From NCBI RefSeq assembly GCF_964204865.1, contig NC_135256.1, positions 9,858,001-9,922,000 of the forward strand: a stretch of DNA of 64,000 bases, given 5' to 3'. The notes below the pieces were generated by a model, which ran no database searches, was not told the origin of the DNA, and saw nothing but the letters and a program-made list of their open reading frames with translations. A program made the translations under genes and the position numbers. This DNA is from Styela clava (taxonomy: Eukaryota). Shown here in pieces: positions 15,653 to 52,199 of this stretch; within the stretch, counting starts at the first letter, position 1; every line of letters starts with the position of its first letter.

Positions 15653-16344
15653 CAATTCCCCCTCGACAGTAAAAATTTTGGAGTCCGGCCGCCGAGAGAT
15701 GAAGTGAAAGAAAACAAAATAACACGAATTAATAAAAGATATTAGTACGATATGATGAATAATGTCTAAGATATACGAAAGAATATACGCCGTTTACGAG
15801 AGAAAACAAAAATACGAGAAAAAAATTCAAAGGGTCTCTAAGTTGCTTAGAAATGCTTAACATTTTAAAATGGAATTGTAACGCAATAGTAAACAAAATG
15901 GCGACAATACTTGAAGGAAGGGACCTAAAAGAATGTAAAACAGCTTTGATGTTTAAAGGAGGGGCCTAAGAAGAAACAAATGGCGGATTTAGTACTTAAG
16001 TATTACACCGAAATTGGTTTGGTGTTTAAGATTGTAAAATTGGCGTTAGAGGTTATTTGAAACAAACTATTAAGAAAAAATCCTGTAAATTGAATAATTA
16101 GTAATTTGACAGATTATTGAACCATTGAATCCCTGAAATTGTACCTGAATCAAATTTTGTATGAAGTAAAAGAACTCATGATATCTAAAAAACAACACAT
16201 TGATTAAAAACAAGTAATTACAAGTACATACACAGAAAAGAAAACTGACACTACACAATTTTTTTATTTGTATGTTTTTTTTTTTATATTTAAATTCTTA
16301 TAGTAAGGTGTTTTGATGTTTTATAATGGATAATAAGAGAAAAA

Positions 16345-17401
16345 TTAATAAAATACAAGACGAATAAAGTGATAAAATACAAGATGATTAATAACGAGGC
16401 GATACATTGCGAGATACACACCATATACAATTCGCAACGACCGCCGGAATCGAGTTGACTTAATAGGGTGGGGATAAATTAAAAGGTTGTTACAGTCAAA
16501 CTTTCGACTCCATTTGAGCTTGGGGGCGCTCGCATCTGAGAAGTTGCTAGCATTTTCCATCGATTCATCGTCAATTTCGACATCGGATAACGGGTGTATT
16601 TCTTGTTGTTCGTTGAATTGTACGACGGGTTGTCGTGGTATGCTGAGAAGTCGTTGTATTGGTTGCAGCAATCCATTTGTTAATGCACAGCGAACGGACA
16701 TTCGGCAGTTTGGCAAACTTCGATAGATGAAATAACCTATGTAAAGCAGGAGTACAACGAATAAAGCGTAAATGAGGCCAAATAGCGGCTACGCCTCTAT
16801 GACGTAATCTGACAATGTTTTCGCAGCTGTCATTTACGTTTAAAACTAAGCTATTGTATGTACGATAGACTTCGTCTGATTCAAAGCAAGATTTCGTTAG
16901 TTGAGAGCAAGTTTCGAAGGTAAGGCTTTGGCCAATGATCGGTATTTCCAATCGGTAAGATTGCCCGATACATTGTAATGTAACAAGAGTTAGATAGCGT
17001 TGAATTTCGGAAAGTTGCGAGCTCTACAAGCTTTCGAATCTTCAACATTCCAAACAAATGTAAACCCACCGTTCCGGAAAAAACCGGAATTGGGTGCGCA
17101 TTGGCTGAGGTATTTGAACGTGTTTTTGGTTGCGCTTGACGAAGAACAGCCATGAAATGGTTCGCCAGTAGGTCGTACGTTTACGATCTTGGTATCAACA
17201 CTTGCAAGAAGTGTAGATGTGGATGTTTGCTGAACAATTCTTTATCGTATGAAGTTTGTGTCGATTGCAAATGGCTGGTTTGCGTATGTCGTAAGTCTGT
17301 CTATGTAACGATTTGTGGCATAATTTCAGTGGTCCCTCAACGGCTTGCGTTCTCATACAAAGCATGACAAAGCAAAGTAATGTGTAGTGAAATATGGTCA
17401 T
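16345..17401 (-). pseudogene. Decayed env-like type I membrane glycoprotein of the Gypsy element
   Basis: ATG at 17401 gives signal-peptide-like MTIFHYTLLCFVMLCMRTQA; Cys-rich fragments across frameshifts (LKLCHK...PAICN...KNCSAN; CAPNSGFFRNGGFTFVWNVEDSKAC at 17100-17026; ETCSQLTKSCF...VNDSCEN); TM helix LFGLIYALFVVLLLYIGYFIY (~16785-16723) followed in frame by a tail RSLPNCR...; lies between pol and the PPT. Confidence 0.7.
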
Positions 17402-20104
17402 CAGATATCCATCTGAAATTCGCTTGATAGAATAAAGTCTTTGCTTAAATGGCGTGGGCGTTTTCTCAGCCTTCGCGGCCGATTTGATTTTTGCTGATTT
17501 GACATTTCCGGAGACGGCCCCAGTCGATGCGCTGAATCTGTAAAATGAATTATTGCATCGCAATTTGATCGTTTCGTGCTTGTATCGGATATCGTATTAT
17601 TATTTGAAATATTGAAATTGAAAGTCCGTGGACGCGAAATCGTGATATCGCTCGCCGGTCGTTCATTTGATTTGGCGCCAAGATTCCTATCCTCAATATC
17701 TTCATGCAATAGGTCAGAAGTTGGTAGGTGTGCAACTTTTAAGTTGTCAATTGAACATTCATACGGCTTTGAGTTCCGGTCGACGATAAAATGCTTACTT
17801 CCACGATTTAAGACCTGGAAGGGTCCTTCATAGAAGTTTTCCAGTCCTTTTCTTGATCGACTGATTTTGATAAAAAAATGGCTACAATTTCTCAAGTCCT
17901 TTGGTATATAAGTTTTTCTTGGAGGCTGTTTGCGTGTTGGATTTGAACAGAGATTTCTGAAAAATCTCTTAAGTTTATTTACATATGTATGAGGGTTAGT
18001 ATTTGTCGCGTCTGGTTGCGGTTCCACAAATTGTCCTGGAAGGCGTAATGTTGATCCGTAAACTAACTCAGCAGGGCTGAAACCCAAATCTTCTTTAACA
18101 ACTGATCGAATACCAAGTAATACAAACCCAAATTCGGAAACCAGTCAGATGGATGTTCACAAGCTCTAAGAGAAGCTTTAACAGTTCGATTAAGACGCTA
18201 AACTAAAAAATTTCCTTGAGGACGATATGGCGCTGTTAATATATGTTTTGAACCAAGGAACATCATGGAATCTTTCCAAGTTGTTGATGTAAATTGCGGT
18301 CAATTATCTGTAATAATTTATTATATAATTATTAGTGAAAGCGTGTACGATTGTATTAGTTAAACTGTCCTTCAATGGAACACAATTGGATATCTTGTAT
18401 ATCTGTCAATTATCATAAGCAAATAAACATAACCATGAGATTGAGGGAGTGGTCCAAGTAAATCTACGTTGATAGTGCTAAAACGTTCATCTGGAACTTT
18501 GATGTTTTTCAATACTGTGCGTATGTGTCGTTGAACTTTTGCTTTCTGGCATCGTATGCTCTCACGAACAAACTTACGGTTGTCTTTACTCATAATCGGC
18601 CAGACATACCTGTCTTTTATAAGTTGTTGAGTTCCTGATATTCCTGGATGACACAAATTATGAGTTAGGTTGATAATGCGATATCGTAATGAAGTTGGAA
18701 TATATGTTCGAGGTTTGCCAGCGAGACTGACGTCACAAATAATGTTTCTTGCCAATCCTGGGACTGGTAATTGTACTAACTGTAGAGAATGCTTGCTTGC
18801 GTTCGTTAGAAGTTGCTTTAGCTCGTGGTCATTTTGTTGTGCGTTATAGATGTCAATTAACGGGATAATTTCCTGTTGAGGAACAATGGCATTTATTCCA
18901 CCATGCTCTGCGGGGTGAATTTCAATTCGGCTCAGTGTGTCCGCTGCGATATTCAATGCACCGGCAATGTGTTCTACTGTGAAATCGAAAGTTGATATGT
19001 ATTCAAGCTGACGGGCCTCCCCTTGGATTAATCGCTCTTTCGGACTTTGAATAGCCTGTACCAGGCTTTTCGAGTCTGAGATTAATTGAAATTTCCTGCC
19101 TGTCAATTCATGCCGAAAATATTTGATAGATTCAAAAATAGCCAGAAGTTCCTTGCCAAAAGTAAAATAAGTTTTCTGGGGGCCACGAAGGGCTCTCGAA
19201 AACATGCCCAGAGGTCTCCATTGATTATTTTCAAACATTTGCAAAACACCTGATATTCCAATGTCAGATGCATCAGTAATTAAACAAATGGGTGCTTGAT
19301 GATGTGGATGAACCAAAAGCGTAGCTTTGGCTAAAGCATGTTTAATGTCATCAAAAGCTTTCAAAGATTCATCATTCAATTTGATTCGAGAACGTTTACT
19401 AGGCTTCACAACTGTCATCTCATTTAATGGTCGTATAATGGTAGCAAAGTTATTTACAAAACGATTATAATATGTACAAAGACCATTGAAAGATCTTAAT
19501 TCTTTCAATGTGTTCGGTTGAGGATATTTTTGCAATACTGCCACCTTGTCGGCTAAGGGTTGTATTCCTTCGGGCGTAACATGATGGCCCAAGAATTTAA
19601 TTTCTGATTTGTTGAAATGGCATTTATCTGGATTTATAGTAAGTCCATAATTGTGTAAGCGTTCTAGAACTTGATCTAATGTTCTTCCTCTGTTTTGGTT
19701 GCAATGAGAATATCGTCGAAGAATACAAATATATTGTCGATGCTCGCTAAAACTTCGGTCATGAAATAATTGAACGTCGCTGGGGCAGATGCTAGCCCGA
19801 AACAAAGAGTTTTACACATGTACATCTTATTTTTGCAGGAAAAGGCTGTTTTTGGTTGATCCGATTCCAAGATAGGAATATGATTATAAGCTTTTGTGAG
19901 ATCAAGTTTAGTGAAATGTCGACAGCCATGCAATTTATTGACAAAATCGGACAAGTGTGACACAGGGTGTTTTTCCTTGATCGTGATTGAATTCAAAAGT
20001 CGAAAATCGAGGCACAGCCTGATAGCATTAGAACCCCGCTTTGGAACGATGGTAACTGGAGAATTATAAACGGAATTACATGGAATTATATCTAAGACTA
20101 TCAC
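17401..20104 (-). pseudogene. pol: Gypsy pol remnant (RT, RNase H, integrase) with frameshifts and stops
   Basis: RT: SPVTIVPK, RLCLDFRLLN, FTKLDLTKAYNHIP, FGLASAPATF, VFFDDIL; RNase H: ITDASDIG, KELLAI, ADTLSR; integrase: HNLCHPG, VDLLGPLP, TDN*PQFTS, FSPAELVYG, YEGPF. Frameshift near 19680; stops in the catalytic core (~18200-18310). Confidence 0.95.
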
Positions 20105-40900: not shown

Positions 40901-42115
40901 ATATATAAAGCACATCAATACTTTTTACAGTTGAATGATCTATTTTGTTTCGCGAAATGCGCTGGGTAAATACATGCATTTTGTTTCCGCTGTTTGTTTC
41001 TGCTGAATGTCGATGTTGGGACATTGATCGCGTAACATACTTCGTGCTAAACAACTCATTGGTATTTTTGATACAGTACCAGGGAACTTTCAAGATGAAA
41101 AATTTCTCTTAGAGAATCGTACAGAGTAACCAAACTATTTTCGAACTAGTTTTCAATGCGCATCATTATCTGTAGGACAGTCGGAAAATTTTTGAAGTTT
41201 ATCCGTGCTACAGGTAATATTATTCGTGAATGGATGGTTCTGATCTTGATCCAATCTTTTCTCGAATGACATATTGTTAGGGTTGCAGTCATCAAAAATA
41301 GAAAGTATACATCGATATTGTGGTTCTTTCAAAGCATAGTGTGCAATGTTTTCAAATCGAGATAGACAAGAACAACGTTGGCAGGACACAGTGAAATGCT
41401 TTTTGCCGACTCTCGTCTTGATTACTTCGCCGTGTTTCTTCGCAAACCGGCCGAGCGGGATTTTTTCTCGGGTGCAAAGGGACATTCTCTTTGTTTTAAT
41501 ACGATGCTTTTTGTAAATAGTCTAGGTTTGTCATTCGTGCAGCAGCGAATGAGTTTATTGTTTACATCTATTTCGAAGATGTAGTAACAATAACGCTTGC
41601 AGAATATCGGATGCTATGTATATATGTTTAATCGTGACTTCAGTCCTCCAAATTTTCTGACATATTAGATAGTTTATATAACAATTATATATATATGGCT
41701 GTCGTGGGTCAGGAAAGGTAGCCTACGGTGAATGTAATTCTATGTTTATAATGTCTGTATCTTATTTTAATATGTCATGCTTGTAGGCAAGGTTTGTAAT
41801 AATGACTGCATGGGTGTGCATAAATGCACTCACTTAGTGACCAATTTTTCCATTAATCATCGCGGAGTTAACAATAACAAAGCGCTTTCGCTTTTGTATT
41901 CGTGCTCATCTCCGTATACTACGTCTTCCAGTAGTGTTTTAATACAGTTTTGTTAACGTAAATATTAATTTTGTGCTTGGAAAGATCGCCCTCGCTTTGC
42001 TTACTTCATGAAAAACGCTAACTAACACTAATAGATAAGTACGGTACTGTTACGGGGGAACATTCACGTCAACTTTTTCGTTCAACAGTATTAATTTACT
42101 CCGTATTAACTTGTA

Positions 42116-45100
42116 ATGTCGAGCGCAGAAACTAGCATTCTCCATCCGGTCGAAACTCGATCAAAATCGATGCAAGAATACAAATCCTGTCAAGATGGCG
42201 ATGCGAATAATTCAGCTTTAATGACCGAATTTCCTCCTAGCAGTGAACCAACACCCACGATGCAAAATTATCCCGCAGGTAACGTAGAATTTAACTTACT
42301 TTGAGCGTACACTGATTTCAACTTATGCTGACAAGTTAGGAACGGCACTATATCTACTTCGCGACCCGGACTGCGTGCTTATTTACGAAAAAAATGGGGG
42401 TTTATCTCCCACATTGATATACGATTTTACATAGAAATGTAGGCCTAAATCAAATATAAAGTTAAGTTTTACGAATATCCGAAACTCACTATTTCCGTCT
42501 CAAAGTGTTTACTTACTCGGCAAGTATTTCGGGTGTGCCGTATGAGGAAAAGAAAAATCTGGCGCTAGCCTCACGAAAAGCGTAATAGCATCTATTACGT
42601 AACAAACAATGTTGCACTCTCAACAACACCGCTGTACAGTAATCTGTTATGCGGTCGATGCCTACATTTAGTCATGTATTTTCTTGCTTGCCGAATTACC
42701 ACCAATGCTGGTCAAATTCACTCTTAAGGGGTAAACTTACTCTTAAAGGGGTAAGTAAACTTACCCCCGGTTGAGAATTCTTTGGCCTAATATATAGCGA
42801 CACTAAGCAAGTACTATATTTCCAATATTTTGATATGCCAGAAAAGTAAAAATAAATTAAACCCTTCTTTTTGAACCTGATTTGGAGGAACTAAAATATA
42901 CTTCCCGGCATTAAATCATTTTAGTATATTTCAACTTTGGCCGCCTTCTGGAGTGAGCGATATGCGACGTTTGTACTATTGTTGTGTACCATTTCTATCA
43001 TTTTCTGTATAGGCTCATGCAACTCATATTACGGTGGTCCAACACCCGCTGGTTATGCAGATTATACAGATCGATTTTCAATGGGATATCAGAGAATGGG
43101 TCCGACAATAACTTTGACAAGCCACAAGTAAGAAACTTTTCAGTCCATTTATCATTCCAGCTTCGTATTACTAAGTAATGTAAATAAATATCCCAGCTAT
43201 GCATTTCTATGCCATTCATCTACTAACTTTAGAAGTTAGTCTGAATTGTATTATTTCGCTAAATTTATTATTTCGTTGAGATACGTTCGGGGTTTACTGA
43301 TTGCACGTATTTGTTTTTGATTGAGCTTTTCCCAAAAATTTGGTACCATAATATCTCCTCCACGAGAACCAAATACACTATAGGGCTGTTAATAATTATG
43401 TTTTACCAGAATTCAATTTGGATGTCAGCAAGCGCCTCCTCCGCCTTCTTACGGCAGGCAACGATCAGACGAACCAGTTTTGCGACATGACCATTGTCTT
43501 TTGCAACCTGCACAGGCGAAATGTAAGTTATAATAAGTATGTTAGGTTAGCTGCAGTTTTATATTAAAATTTTTTATTGATTGCATCGAGGATATTTCAG
43601 TCAGATATTTTTGTTGGCGGCTATCGCGCGATTGAAATAGCATCGGTTATTATTTGAATAATTTTTGCGTATTTTAGCTTGGGCTGATACATCAGTTGAA
43701 CATACTCCGGCTCCACCCACGACTTCAGCTCCTACGAAACCCAACAACAGAGGAAGAACAACTTATTCTGATGCACAGGTAAACGCGATTTGTAATGAAT
43801 CGGCGAACCTAGCCATCAATGTACAGCTCACCCCTTGAGCACAAGATCCAATGTTTGTTATAGGCCTTTGATACATTCTGGTGTTGTTCCTTGCTTTAGT
43901 AATATAATGAATCTGTTTCCGTCTAGATTGCCGAATTGGAAGGGGTGTTTCATAGTAATCCATATCCAACTGCTCAAACGCGGCAACACCTTGCTTGCAA
44001 AATTGATGTTCCTGAAGGAAAAGTTAAGGTAAGCCATCAACGGTATCAAAACTTAAGCGAAGCATGCGAAATGAAAAGTTGTATTATCGTATAAATTTCA
44101 TCATTTTAATTGTATCCCAAATAGTTATCCAACTTATCCATACATTCAGTGCATGTCATTTAATAGTAATAATTATGACGATGTGTCAAAACCTGGCACT
44201 TGCGGCATTAAATATTTAAGAGTGGTATAAATTGGAACATTTTAAGCATATTTAAGAAGTTAAGTAGACTAAAAAATATACAGTCTAGTGCCACGGTTCG
44301 AGTCGACAGCAATAAATAGATAACTTAGAGGCTCTCTAGTACAGGTGTGGCCAACCCGCGGCTCGCGAGCGCATGTGGCTCTTGCCCCAGTTTTATGCGG
44401 CTCTTCTCTTGGTTATTTTAAGGAAAAAATACTTGCAGACTGCGATTCATCTTGTTCCAATTATATGATTCATCGTGCATTCTTCGCCTTTATTCTCTAG
44501 TACTTGGCGTGAGCCATACGCGATTGTGTTTTTCTAGTTTATCAGTATTACCACTTCGCGAGGTGATGTATGTGTTTACATACTCATGTTACATACTGCT
44601 TCTTTTAGATATGGTTTCAAAATCGTCGAGCGAGAGCCAAGAAGATAAAGATGGGTTGTGGAGGAGGAAATTGGCGAACTGGCCATAACGAATCGAAAAC
44701 TACCGATGAGCATACAAATCAAAATAACAACAATATGAAATCCGATTGCAGCAAACTTTCATCAATTGACTCTTCTTCCATTTCAATCAATTCACTTTTA
44801 CCTTTACCTACAAAACCTATAATTGCTGCCAGTAAGTGGCCAGGGTCCTCCTGCATGCATCCGTGGAGAGCACCTTACCATCCCGAAGCCAGTCACTCAT
44901 GCAGAATGCATTCACATCCCCAGCCTTATTGTTCTGGACATTCGGGATGCTCATGCGCTCCAACTGGGCCAAGAAATGTCAAAATGTGGAATTGGGGTTC
45001 TGGAAATTATATGCCACAGCCTTGCCATTCAATGTACAAACCTGAGTTGGACGATTACAGAAACCCTGCCCATAATTCATGGGATTCCCATTGTGCTTTC

Positions 45101-46171
45101 GGGAACGCGCCTGACATTGTAACAAAGACGTCAAAAGTTCGATTAAACGATTCAAGTATAAGTAATGGCGAAGAAAATACTTCTAATACGTCAAAACATG
45201 AAAACCCCCACGATACATCTGCATCCGAGACAGAACAGATGAATACATCGGAGAGATTTTCTGAGAGCGCCAAGATTATTAATCCTTATGACGCCGAAAC
45301 GTGTTCCATTGCACCGACGTACAACTCTCATTTTTATCCGGGAATAATGCCGCAAGAGAGACGACAAGCAATGGAAGAACTATCCAGCCCACCACCAATT
45401 CGAAGACTAATTTTTCCATTCCATACTCTTACTGATGTTAAATCCGTAAAACCGGAAGCAGGGACAATGGGATCTTCTCCTTACCCTACCGTTTACACGA
45501 GGCCGCTCACGACGCCATCAGAAAGTGGATATATTGTTGGACCGAGGGGATATCAAAATCCAACTTCTGCCCAATTCAATATCCAGGCAATTAAAATTCC
45601 AGATTCCTACCAGCCTTATCCATACCTTACCACAACATCGCGCTACTCAGACGCCACTCAATATAATCTTGAGTCAGATGGATACAATCATGCTTATCAC
45701 ATGGCAAGCAAGTGGAATCCTCACTGTCCCGAAACAAATTCTTATCATATTCCGCCAGCGGCCGTAGATGACGAAAATCGCCAAAACTCGCTAAATGACC
45801 AAGATAAAGCCGTCAGCGACGACGGCGAGGCAACTGATGACGCAGTTGATGAAGTAGGAATGATGGAGGGTGATAAACAGGACGAAAGAGCCCAGGACGT
45901 TAAATCGTTTTGTTACGACACAGAAGGGTCACAAAATTTTTCGGCTGACTGTTGGACAAATCGTCCATCAACCTCAAGCATTTTGGTAAAAGCAATGGAA
46001 TTTGCCACAAATGAAGGTGTGGATACTAAGGACGGCGTTGAAGATAGTAATGAAAATAGGATTTCTGGACTTGCTAGTGATGTAATACCACCTGTCGATT
46101 CAAGCGCGGTTTGGTCCAACCAACTCATAAATGGAATGTATCCATCGGTATCCGCTTCTATGGTTGGGTGA
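42116..46171 (+). CDS. Divergent PRD-class (Q50) homeodomain transcription factor, 6 exons, 718 aa
   Basis: Exons 42116-42278, 43013-43127, 43410-43522, 43678-43778, 43927-44028, 44609-46171 (2157 nt, GT-AG, open frame). Homeodomain NNRGRTTYSDAQ|IAELEGVFHSNPYPTAQTRQHLACKIDVPEGKVK|[14 protein letters not shown] has R5, L16, F20, Y25-P26, W48-F49-Q50-N51, R53 and the PRD-typical intron between positions 46 and 47. Confidence 0.9.
44342..44405 (+). mobile_element. Truncated hAT (Charlie-like) left end in intron 5 of the homeobox gene
   Basis: CAGGTGTGGCCAACCCGCGGCTCGCGAGC...GTGGCTC...GCGGCTC preceded by CTCTAGTA; no matching right end seen. Confidence 0.5.
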
Positions 46172-49100
46172 GAGCGTTTATATTATGCGACTGACAATTA
46201 TTTCTGCAAAATGTTTTCAGAAAATTCTTTTTAATTTTCATAATTGTTAATTTCTTCTTAATTGCCAAATTAAGTTTTTCACATACGCTTGCCATGTTCC
46301 ATTGTTAATGAACTTTTGTCTTTTGTATTTGATCTGTATTTTCTAGCTGACAATCAATTTCGGTGCAATATTGTATAGCTAGATAAAATAAACTTGATTT
46401 GGGTATTCACTGAAAAGCTAGGTATGCATTGTTGTTCCTCTTGCTGGTGACAAATTGCTTTCTCAATCTCTTGACTTGTGTTCCTGTTACGGTGTATCGC
46501 GTTTGCGCCAGGGTTTTGGTGGTAATTTTAAGTCAAACATTTACTTTGTCCAGTTCTCTAATATTATGAGTTGCGGTTTAATATCGATACGTTACAGTTG
46601 TACATAGATAAAAACTGAATACATCATAAATCAATTTGTTCTCACTATTTTTATGGATGTGGATCGACTTTCTCAACTCAATTTTTTCAATCTAATTTAT
46701 CTTATTCCTTGTAATCCAATTTTCATTACGAACAAATTTGTATTTTGTACACAACTTTTCAATGCGAAACATGAATATGGGTTATTTAGTACCTATCCAG
46801 CCATATATTGATCAAGTTCAGCTATCTGTCATGGATGCATGATGAAAATAAAAATCAATTTATTGATGATAAAATATTAATCACGAGGTAATACCATCAA
46901 AAACATGCTCGAGATAATTGTAAAATATAACATTCCATATTTTTTAGTACGCTGGGTGTTTAGTCGAAAATCAGTCCGTTCAGCACCCGCAACACAATGG
47001 CCCATAAGTGAAATTTTATTGTTATTCGTTATCACTGTCAAGAAATATCGTCCATACAATGTTTACTGGCCTACCTTGGTTAGGTTTGTACACGCTACCA
47101 TTCGTTACTGTCACAATCTATTATTTAATTATTGTACTACTTTATTTTTGCCATCTTATGAAATCAATCACGAGTTTCCATTGCCAATCATTTATGTCGC
47201 ACTAATAAACTATTCGTTTAACTTGGGGAAATAAAAAGACAATCACGAAATATTATATTCGTATGATTTTTGTACTTTTTGGCAGTGGAGATTTAGCAAA
47301 ATAAGTCTAAAATCATATGTATATTGGAAAGAAGAAATCTTATTATGTACGGGAGCCATACCACATATCGGGTTGTAACTCAAATTTATAAGTTCACCAA
47401 CTCAAAGCTGGGATGCGTAAAGAATAATATGTTTACAACATAGCATATACGAGAGTTTTAATTATACCATTGTACGTTCAATCAACAGTAACTTAGAAAT
47501 GGGGGTGACTTCGATATAGAATCAGTAAGCAGTAGTTTGTTTTCAATTGATACTGAAAACACACCACAAAAATTAAAAATCAACTCAGAAATAACATTTC
47601 AAAGGAAAACACTGAAAAATTATACTGGTTATCGAGCAGACATCTTTTACGAGGCAATACCAGTAGTTGATATAATTATAAAAGAAAGAATTTGAATAAG
47701 TAGAAACATTAGAAAAAAGTATATATACGAAATCACGTTTAGTTGGATATCATGACTCTTCCATGATATGATTAATGGAAAAAGTGTTACCATTTTTTAC
47801 TATTATTATTATTTTTATATCAGAAGACTAGAAGCATCCTCCTTTACATTGTCAGCTGCTATGTACGCAGATATTTTTCCGCAGTATACTTGTTGTAAGC
47901 GCCAATTCTAAAAGCGGAAATGTAACGATATTGTAAAACATGTTCGATTGGGCATCACATACAACTCGTTTCGAATTTTGTACATGGCCTTGTTTGCGTA
48001 GTTTCCCGCTGAAATGTTTGAATATATTAATTCTGACGTCTTTTTTATAAAATTGATACAGATGTAGAATTACGCGGCAAAATTATGCCATATAATTTTC
48101 ATATTTCCAATGAGTCACGTATTTGATCTTTACGTTAAACAGAACTAAAATCAAAAATTCATTTTGAAGTTTGTTTTGTATATACCTCGCCGACTGCAAA
48201 TTTACATTCGAAAAAATGATTTGCTTTATTTTGAAAAACATAGAAAGATGTCTTCAACTAGCCATTGTCTGTTTCTTTAACGTAAAATCCCTGTTTTCAT
48301 GGTTCGAATTAATATGGCGGCTTGTAAACAAATTAAAAATGGAGTCCATATCAAAATAAACCGAACGACGTGCCTATTGAACTGATCTCTGAACTTCGTG
48401 ACTAGTATGAATCGGTTGAGTAGGAGACGGGTCGAATTCCAAACACCCGTCACTGGGAGTGCACAGATGAGGAAAAGCAATCTCCCAGTTGAAAACAATA
48501 CTATTCTTCTCTCGATGCCGCCAGTATTACTCATGTCGCACCGTTTCTAGCTTTCATTTTGCCGGAAACAGAAGCAATTTATCATATAGAGTGCTGAACA
48601 ATAAGACCAGTCTGTCATTGACAGATTATGACTACAAAATCTGTCAGTCTATCCTCGTTACAATTTTATAGTCGAATTTCTCGTTGTCAACAAGAATGAG
48701 AGAAAAAAGCTCTGTTTCTGGAGTCTCCTTAACTGGGAAATTGTCGATTAATAGAACGATATATGATAACGGCATTAATATATATATTGAACTGTACCCG
48801 ACTTTGTAATGCACATTCATTGAGATCCCACGATCCGGTAACTTCTCATTACAAAGTTACATATAAAGGCTATAACATACGCCAATGCAGATATAATATA
48901 TAGATTGAGTAAAACACCGTGTATATGGTAAATGTGGCCGTATTCTCCTGTTGTCGCTTGGTCTACGTTGTCGAAATAATTAATTCAAATGGCGTGCTAA
49001 TAAATTTCAACCTTTAGAATGTGTCAGAATTATTTTTGAAAACAAATTGCTGTTCTTAACCTGATTTTAGTAACTAGTATAATTAATCTTTTCTTGACAG

Positions 49101-50587: not shown

Positions 50588-52199
50588 TTACTGTAAAATT
50601 GGTAGAGGCATCGATGCGTGCCGATTTGCATCAGTGATGTTACCCGCGTAGAATGGTGGATATGCCGGATACACAAAGTCTGAGCGTTTTGATGTATATA
50701 TTTGATGCATTGAGTTTGCCAACAGAGTTTCTGTATTTCCTCGTGATATGGTATCTGAATAAGCACCTCGGACTTCCGAGTGTGTTACCGGTGACATTGT
50801 CGATGGTAACCCACAGTATATATTCGAATATCCCGAGTAAGCGGGCATAGCTGTCATTAACGGTATTCCAGGGCCGGAAGTTGAGCCAAGGACGGAACAG
50901 GCCGCAGCTGCAAACTTCGCTTGCTCGATCTTTGCTTCTTGCAAGCGCTTTGACTTTGCTCTTCGATTTTGAAACCAGATTTTAACCTGGTAAGTACAAA
51001 ATTCATTATGTTATATAATACTATCTATTTACGGTGTAAGTTACAGCTATTTCTGTAGTAGCACCTCTTATAAATTCGTAAAATGTATCATACTTTTCAT
51101 TTGCCTATTTTTTTGAAATTTCTGGCATTACATTTATAGCAATATTACATTTATATATGATTTATACTAAAGTTAGGTTTTAAGGGCATTGAAATTTCAC
51201 TACAAAGAATACAAGGATTATAAATGTATGAACATTAAAACGTTCTAAATCAATTTACTAGTTCACCGCAGTTGTTGCGATGTTTGGTAATGATGATTTT
51301 CAGAAAAAGTTGCCTATTTCTTGGCATTAAAAATTGTCACCTTATAATATTATCACAAAAAAATAAAATCACCTGTGTTTCCGATAGTTGAAGCGACGAA
51401 GAAAACTCAGCTCTTTCAGCGATAGAAAGATACTGCTTTTTAGCGAATTTGTTCTCCAATGACAGAAGTTGGTGAGTTGTAAATGGGGTTCGAGGTTTTC
51501 TGTTTGGCTTGTGTTTTCTCAAGTTTGAAAATGCTGTTCCTGAAATATGAGAATAAATATTAAATAATTCTGTAAATAAAATAGTCATTGCAATTACAAA
51601 TATACAGTAACTAAAGAAAAAAATTAATGAACTGAATAGTAAAAATGAAATACTTGAAATATATTTTTAAAATACATTTCTAAGAAGTTATTCAAATAAT
51701 AAGCCTGTTTCTTACCAGAATCTGATTTTTCATGAGACTTTCTTTGTGGAGTGGAGTGTAACGGACTTGGTGAAGAACTAGGTGATATAGATAAGTTGCT
51801 TCTTGCTGGAGACAATGATTGTTCAGAATGATTTCTTGTTGATGACACGTTTTCCAAAAATGTGTAATCTCTTCCAATATGATTTTCATTAGTTTTCATA
51901 ACATTCACTACATCAGCATAAAATCTGGGATTGAATGTGGAGTTCGAATTTTCGATTAAATTTTGCACTGTAGATGATTCCTTTGTTTTACTCGTGCTCC
52001 CTTGTTTTCCGATTATCGATTCTATTGAAAAAGAAAATCTTGGTGGCTTGTTTTCGACAGTTTCAATTGTCGTTTTGATTTCGGTAGCTTCATTTCTGTC
52101 ATTGAACATTGTATTGGAAATGTCTAAACCAGTAGATTCCTCACGTTCATATTTTATTCTCTGGTTTTCGTCACCTACTGAACTCAATCCGTTTGACAT
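50588..52199 (-). CDS. Msx: Msx homeobox protein, 3 coding exons
   Basis: Exons 52199-51716, 51539-51373, 50986-50588. eh1 motif FSIESIIG; [50 protein letters not shown]|[21 protein letters not shown] is diagnostic of Msx. Confidence 0.97.

Follow-up and report, generated by a model that had tools for sequence, protein, structure and literature searches.

The 64,000-nucleotide (nt) stretch of the Styela clava genome analysed here, called the window throughout (contig NC_135256.1, positions 9,858,001 to 9,922,000), contains a six-exon homeobox gene, LOC120328458, at positions 42116–46171 of its plus strand. Direct reading of the DNA, protein-to-window alignment and phase arithmetic together give a product of 718 residues. 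The coding total is 2157 nt, which corresponds to 718 codons and a stop. The five introns are all bounded by GT..AG, with a pyrimidine tract before each AG, and interrupt the frame in phases 1, 2, 1, 0 and 0. Analyses of the whole protein are based on the public RefSeq sequence XP_039250884.2, which tblastn places on the window exon by exon.

Exon 1 (42107..42278) begins at the first position of the transcript contigs described below, has its ATG at 42116, and encodes residues 1–54 and the first base of codon 55, ending at the donor CAG|GTAACG. Exon 2 (43013..43127) supplies residues 55–92 and part of residue 93 and is followed by a phase-2 intron; exon 3 (43410..43522) continues to residue 130 and precedes a phase-1 intron. 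The homeodomain is composed of segments from the last three exons. The final 36 nt (43743–43778) of exon 4 (43678..43778) encode its residues 1–12, NNRGRTTYSDAQ, and exon 5 (43927..44028), bounded on both sides by phase-0 introns, encodes residues 13–46, IAELEGVFHSNPYPTAQTRQHLACKIDVPEGKVK, which include helix 1, helix 2, the turn, NPYP and VPEGKVK. The 5′ end of exon 6 (44609..44650) adds residues 47–60, the recognition helix with Q50, and the remainder of that exon (44651..46171) encodes a C-terminal tail of residues 213–718, predicted to be disordered, and the stop codon.

An earlier note made from the DNA letters alone had proposed that the 506-residue open reading frame (ORF) at 44651 is the tail of a larger protein whose homeodomain is put together from three exons, and this reading is correct. 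The ORF opens with M213, the residue directly after the homeodomain, and the frame is intact across all six exons. The 60-residue homeodomain spans residues 153–212 of the protein and is split 12/34/14 across exons 4–6. Exon reading and phase arithmetic place intron 4 after homeodomain residue 12 (Q164|I165) and intron 5 after residue 46 (K198|I199), both in phase 0.

The gene is transcribed and spliced. Nine presumed RNA runs contain roughly one half of the words sampled from the 4.4-kilobase (kb) stretch, which is the share expected from the exons alone. Transcript contigs of four runs from three studies (X1, X3, X5 and X6) were aligned to positions 41400–46900. They align as single pieces of 1.3–3.2 kb from which the introns have been removed at the predicted GT..AG sites. 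Junctions 43127/43410, 43522/43678, 43778/43927 and 44028/44609 are present in contigs from the three studies (X1/X3, X5 and X6), and junction 42278/43013 is also present in X1 and X3, where single contigs of 3231–3233 nt start at 42107 and include all five junctions. The last two of the four shared junctions, which create the complete homeodomain, are those for which confirmation from RNA had been suggested. The contigs continue for about 1.06 kb into the 3′ untranslated region (46172..47236); they extend beyond 46900, and the end at about 47236, estimated from contig size, lies right after AATAAA sequences at 47204 and 47230. Within exon 6, the contigs differ from the genome at 11 positions, nine of them synonymous and two non-synonymous, and this ratio indicates that the long tail is under purifying selection. 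The locus is a real, spliced and transcribed homeobox transcription-factor gene, and its splicing is exactly as previously modelled.

The description of the gene as hidden does not hold. For exon 6, a RefSeq protein of Styela clava gives a 99% match, and the 718-residue model is identical, residue for residue, to XP_039250884.2, ‘uncharacterized protein LOC120328458’. The preceding version, XP_039250884.1, has 396 residues and the name ‘homeobox protein aristaless-like 3’; its N-terminus is truncated and its end is frame-shifted. Compared with positions 45301–45435 of the window, the C-terminal end of version 1 (…TFLSGNNAARETTSNGRTIQPTTNSKTNFSIPYSY) corresponds to the +1 frame of exon 6. The length of 396 residues therefore reflects a frame error in the earlier model, and the transcript contigs back the uninterrupted frame. 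The ‘aristaless-like 3’ label should be abandoned, and LOC120328458 can instead be described as a PRD-like homeobox factor orthologous to Ciona NP_001071802.1.

The homeodomain is the only domain identified in the protein. Pfam Homeodomain (PF00046) matches the product of exon 5 alone with 30.9 bits (cut-off 22.9; E = 2.4e-7) over profile positions 12–45, with the start of exon 6 covering positions 46–57, and matches the 718-residue RefSeq protein with 73.5 bits (E = 1.2e-20) at residues 155–210. The same Pfam search of the full protein gave no paired domain, no second homeodomain and, at E ≤ 0.01, no OAR domain. The residues singled out before (N1, N2, G4, Y8, N23-P24-Y25-P26, VPEGKVK and Q50) are all present as described, and the recognition residues R5, I47, Q50, N51 and R53 are intact. 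An AlphaFold model based on a seven-sequence alignment places the three helices at residues 162–174, 180–190 and 194–214, with a predicted local distance difference test score (pLDDT) above 90 for residues ∼157–214. Nearly everywhere else the pLDDT is below 50, with a small rise at the SPPxIRR motif of the tail. The predicted layout is thus ∼150 disordered residues, the homeodomain and then ∼500 disordered residues.

Relatives of this protein were recovered from other ascidians. A word search with the homeodomain region identified four, with 69–75% identity: Ciona savignyi H2ZJE4, a partial model; Phallusia mammillata CAB3254105.1, of 688 residues; and Clavelina lepadiformis LOC143463236 and LOC143463237. 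The two Clavelina genes are near-identical and have consecutive locus numbers on one chromosome-sized contig, an arrangement that points to recent duplication in tandem. Two further sequences came from a HMMER profile search against 1.84 billion representative proteins. One is Ciona intestinalis NP_001071802.1 (BAE06655.1, Q4H2X2), a 744-residue ‘transcription factor protein’ from a cloned complementary DNA (cDNA); the other is P0059, a 381-residue protein from a transcript assembly (Logan), whose best relatives are the ascidian family. When exon 6 served as the word-search query, the Styela protein was the sole match, and no relatives of the tail were found in this way. The gene is single-copy in Styela, where the next genome match to exon 5 is 47–52% identical.

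The homeodomains of 155 collected proteins were scored against a 60-residue family profile. Family members score 127–136 bits and share 41–46 of the 60 positions (68–77%) with the Styela homeodomain; P0059 scores 88 bits with 35/60 identical, and the best outsiders score ≤78 bits with ≤32/60 identical. These outsiders are a mixed group comprising primate DUXA, frog ISX, a caecilian ‘Pax-6-like’ protein, a sea-cucumber ‘Rx-B-like’ protein, and hypothetical proteins of a bivalve, a fly and a nematode. The pattern of the family homeodomain begins xxRGRTxYS..Q..[EQ]LE..[FY]..N[PA]YP…[IL].V..[GSA]K[VI]. Short motifs in the tail are shared as well. The most prominent, SPPxIRR(F/L)xFPF, is present in Styela (45386..45421, plus strand, residues 458–469, SPPPIRRLIFPF) and in the Ciona, Phallusia and Clavelina orthologues, and is degenerate in P0059. 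An NWR motif directly after the homeodomain is also shared by the family, an RFPVI motif of the other species' orthologues is unrecognisable in Styela, and the three terminal residues, MVG (46160..46168), are the same in the Ciona intestinalis orthologue. The tail motifs were not found in the other collected proteins, a check that covered the 155 and a few more.

As judged from these sequences, the family is known to date from ascidians alone (Ciona intestinalis, C. savignyi, Phallusia, Clavelina and Styela), with P0059 as one unplaced transcript. The distance between outsiders and members on both measures means that the status of ‘orphan’ holds at the level of ascidians, and that the absence of a nameable family for this homeodomain, remarked on from the letters alone, was a sound observation. 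The term ‘lineage-specific’ has to be taken more broadly than first meant: the gene is not specific to Styela, being conserved in all three ascidian orders sampled (represented by Ciona/Phallusia, Clavelina and Styela).

Within the homeodomain superclass, the gene is probably PRD-like. The Q50 paired-like character first suggested for it is supported by Q50 itself (Q202), by the Y25-P26 pair (N175-P176-Y177-P178 occupy positions 23–26), by the lack of a paired domain, and by the phase-0 46/47 intron, which is present in transcripts as junction 44028/44609. That this intron position marks paired-like genes is borne out in the Styela genome, where the loci matched by exon 5 include genes with Phox2-, Rx-, Shox- and Unc4-like domains; these are all interrupted after residue 46, and the next exon starts VWFQNRR. 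A neighbouring homeobox gene, presumably Msx by its domain, has its intron at 44/45, not 46/47. Of the solved structures, PHOX2B (54 bits), CRX, ALX4 (49 bits), Paired and Aristaless give the highest single-domain scores, in a range of 54–48 bits.

The intron after residue 12 had been thought unusual, and this is partly so: its 12/13 position differs from the others, but an extra early homeobox intron is also found in the Phox2-like gene, after residue 14. LOC120328458 is therefore not the only gene with an added intron in helix 1. The Phox2-like gene (contig 18, 13136429–13139521) has a three-exon homeobox with introns after residues 14 (…SSQLK|ELERVF…) and 46.

Some observations weigh against a PRD-like assignment. 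ANTP-class structures follow close behind the best matches, with GBX1 and Ubx at 45–43 bits and GBX1, Ubx and Engrailed ∼9–12 bits lower than the top. The K46-I47 start of helix 3 is also a feature of ANTP-class domains. A tree built from the 99 highest-scoring homeodomains, and confined to such top matches instead of a curated sample of every PRD family, unites the family with P0059 (94/78, unstarred) outside the ISX, DUXA and Rx-like groups, and gives it a Hox-like sister group with weak, unstarred values (92/67). This sister group probably reflects the helix 3 sequence. Taking the evidence together, the best explanation, to which we assign a probability of roughly 80%, is that LOC120328458 is a single-copy gene for a sequence-specific factor with one PRD-like Q50 homeodomain, belonging to a family so far known only from ascidians.

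A different origin would make the gene an ascidian orthologue, much diverged, of an established bilaterian or vertebrate PRD family (Alx, or one of the fast-evolving Isx, Nobox, Sebox, Mix and Dux) and not a tunicate novelty. This is unlikely, although several features would fit it: the first RefSeq version carried the aristaless-like name, ALX4 and Aristaless are among the best structural matches, DUXA and ISX rank with the highest-scoring outsiders on the family profile, and ascidian genes evolve fast. NOBOX has Y8 and a long tail following an N-terminal homeodomain, and the Styela protein shares both features. The outsiders, however, are no more than 32/60 identical and are separated from the members by a gap of 50 bits, and the tree keeps the family apart from the ISX, DUXA and Rx-like groups. 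Fast evolution alone is insufficient as an explanation, because the Phox2-, Rx-, Shox- and Unc4-like domains of Styela are close to their vertebrate counterparts; the ceiling of ∼50% identity to outsiders is thus not just general ascidian divergence. Pfam, moreover, shows neither an OAR domain nor a second homeodomain. Candidate families were also considered by name. Alx/aristaless was rejected given the modest 49 bits of ALX4, the lack of a Pfam OAR match at E ≤ 0.01 and the removal of the name in RefSeq version 2; Dux was rejected because Pfam identifies a single homeodomain stretch where two linked ones are required.

Less likely still is derivation from an ANTP-class (NK-like) gene, perhaps by duplication near Msx, with convergence on paired-like features. 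The gene lies tail to tail with the Msx-type gene a few kb away, many ANTP-class domains have the helix 3 sequence seen here, the tree gives an unstarred Hox-like sister group, and the Engrailed, Gbx and Ubx structures are just ∼9–12 bits below the best PRD matches. Set against this, all five of the highest single-domain structure matches belong to the PRD class, and the intron lies at 46/47 as in the Styela PRD-like genes, whereas that of Msx lies at 44/45. P26 is present, and a preprint describes the absence of P26 as a synapomorphy of ANTP-like homeodomains (10.1101/2023.03.14.532566).

A decaying locus or annotation artefact, as the long, low-complexity and poorly conserved tail and the truncated, frame-shifted first RefSeq model might suggest, is scarcely credible for a 718-codon frame that is unbroken over six exons with canonical splice sites, yields full-length spliced transcripts in three studies, differs between contigs and genome at nine synonymous and two non-synonymous positions in exon 6, and keeps its homeodomain and tail motifs across ascidian orders.

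The Msx-type homeobox gene occupies positions 50591–52199 of the minus strand. Its first exon contains an ORF at 52199–51627 with an eh1-like FSIESIIG motif, a middle exon at ∼51504–51373 encodes homeodomain residues 1–44, ending SETQ, and the last exon (50983–50591) follows the homeobox intron. A survey of Styela transcription factors (PMC8122590) reports an MSH-B-like gene for a homeodomain protein, on a contig that has no second gene of this kind. This might mean that the survey's EVM annotation missed LOC120328458, but its models are not mappable to the window, and nothing was concluded from it. Elsewhere in the window, the remnant of a Gypsy-type retrotransposon with long ORFs lies on the minus strand at ∼16300–20100. 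Its 477-residue ORF (18372–19805) has the appearance of RNase H and integrase and is flanked by ORFs at 19676–20104 and 17401–18087. No transfer RNA or Rfam match was found across the 64,000-nt window.

If LOC120328458 is an ascidian-only, PRD-like factor, as we favour, its homeodomain may bind the TAAT-core sites typical of Q50 homeodomains through R5, I47, Q50, N51 and R53, as general homeodomain knowledge would predict. Partner proteins could be recruited by the conserved linear motifs of its disordered tail, acting as docking sites.

A developmental role in early embryos is plausible by analogy, and from what has been published on the Prdtun genes of Ciona. Ciona Prdtun1 is also known as Prd-A. 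Studies of Ciona list ‘Prd-B/Prdtun2’, detected as protein in the egg, among the known maternal factors, and describe zygotic transcription of ‘Prdtun1’ at the 16- to 32-cell stage as masked by high maternal expression. The Ciona orthologue of the Styela gene is probably Prdtun1 or Prdtun2, because it is a paired-like orphan and comes from cDNAs of the same laboratory. By this reasoning we consider it reasonably likely that the Styela gene is one of these two tunicate-specific PRD genes, which would place its action in the egg or early embryo. Other observations argue for caution. The literature searched gave no text tying NP_001071802.1 to either Prdtun gene, and contained no mention of NP_001071802, BAE06655, Q4H2X2, XP_039250884 or LOC120328458; ‘Prdtun’ and ‘Prd-B’ do not occur in the examined supplements of the Ciona proteome paper. 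The Styela transcript data are contigs with coded run records, and so convey no level, stage, tissue or strand. Maternal or early-embryo action thus remains a suggestion drawn from the Ciona literature.

A bolder version of this idea is that the gene represents a tunicate invention: a maternally loaded paired-like factor whose SPPxIRRFxFPF motif recruits a specific partner and which functions during zygotic genome activation or immediately before it. We regard this as speculative and doubtful. Lineage-restricted, fast-evolving PRD-like genes have repeatedly been linked to the earliest embryonic gene activation in mammals, and ascidians are a classic system for maternal determinants. If the idea were true, the gene would be a functional analogue of the mammalian lineage-restricted PRD-like genes Dux, Obox and Tprx, and it would be directly testable in ascidian embryos. 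Experiments on a conserved paired-like factor that is restricted to ascidians and has defined tail motifs would be cheap in Ciona or Phallusia, by knock-down, systematic evolution of ligands by exponential enrichment (SELEX) or deletion of the motifs. The practical yield for Styela itself is small. The annotation and the Ciona cDNA were already known, as was, probably, the gene's name in Ciona.

The Styela protein can be compared with several known systems. The closest are the orthologues of Ciona, Phallusia and Clavelina, in which the 68–77% identical homeodomain is situated at the same place, ∼150 residues from the N-terminus, and is followed by a long disordered tail containing SPPxIRR(F/L)xFPF. 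The NWR patch directly following the homeodomain is found in the Ciona savignyi and Phallusia orthologues, and the C-terminal MVG in that of Ciona. In contrast, the remaining tail is almost unalignable (overall identity 24–28%), RFPVI is recognisable in the other species but not in Styela, and Clavelina has two near-identical genes where Styela has one.

The canonical Q50 families (Phox2, Alx/Aristaless, Rx, Shox and Prrx) resemble the Styela gene in their three-helix homeodomain with Q50 and Y25-P26, in the phase-0 46/47 intron and in the lack of a paired domain, with PHOX2B and ALX4 scoring near the top of the solved structures matched to it. They differ in several respects. Homeodomain identity is just ∼45–53%, and the Styela protein has N-N-R-G at positions 1–4 in place of a basic arm, Y8 in place of F8, and K46-I47 in place of Q46-V47. 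It also lacks the OAR motif and the octapeptide, and its gene has the added intron after residue 12.

The fast-evolving orphan PRD genes of vertebrates, which include Dux, Isx, Mix, Nobox and Sebox among the ‘orphan’ homeobox families defined by Holland et al. (PMC2211742), are similarly lineage-restricted, with divergent homeodomains that are hard to place, and two of them, DUXA and ISX, stand near the top of the outsiders scored with the family profile. The Styela protein has one homeodomain, unlike Dux, does not group with these genes in the tree and is at most 32/60 identical to them; a shared early-embryo role would be one of analogy. With Ciona Prdtun1 and Prd-B/Prdtun2 the comparison is by literature description. 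As described, these are likewise PRD-class homeobox genes without orthologues outside tunicates, and the Ciona genes are maternal.

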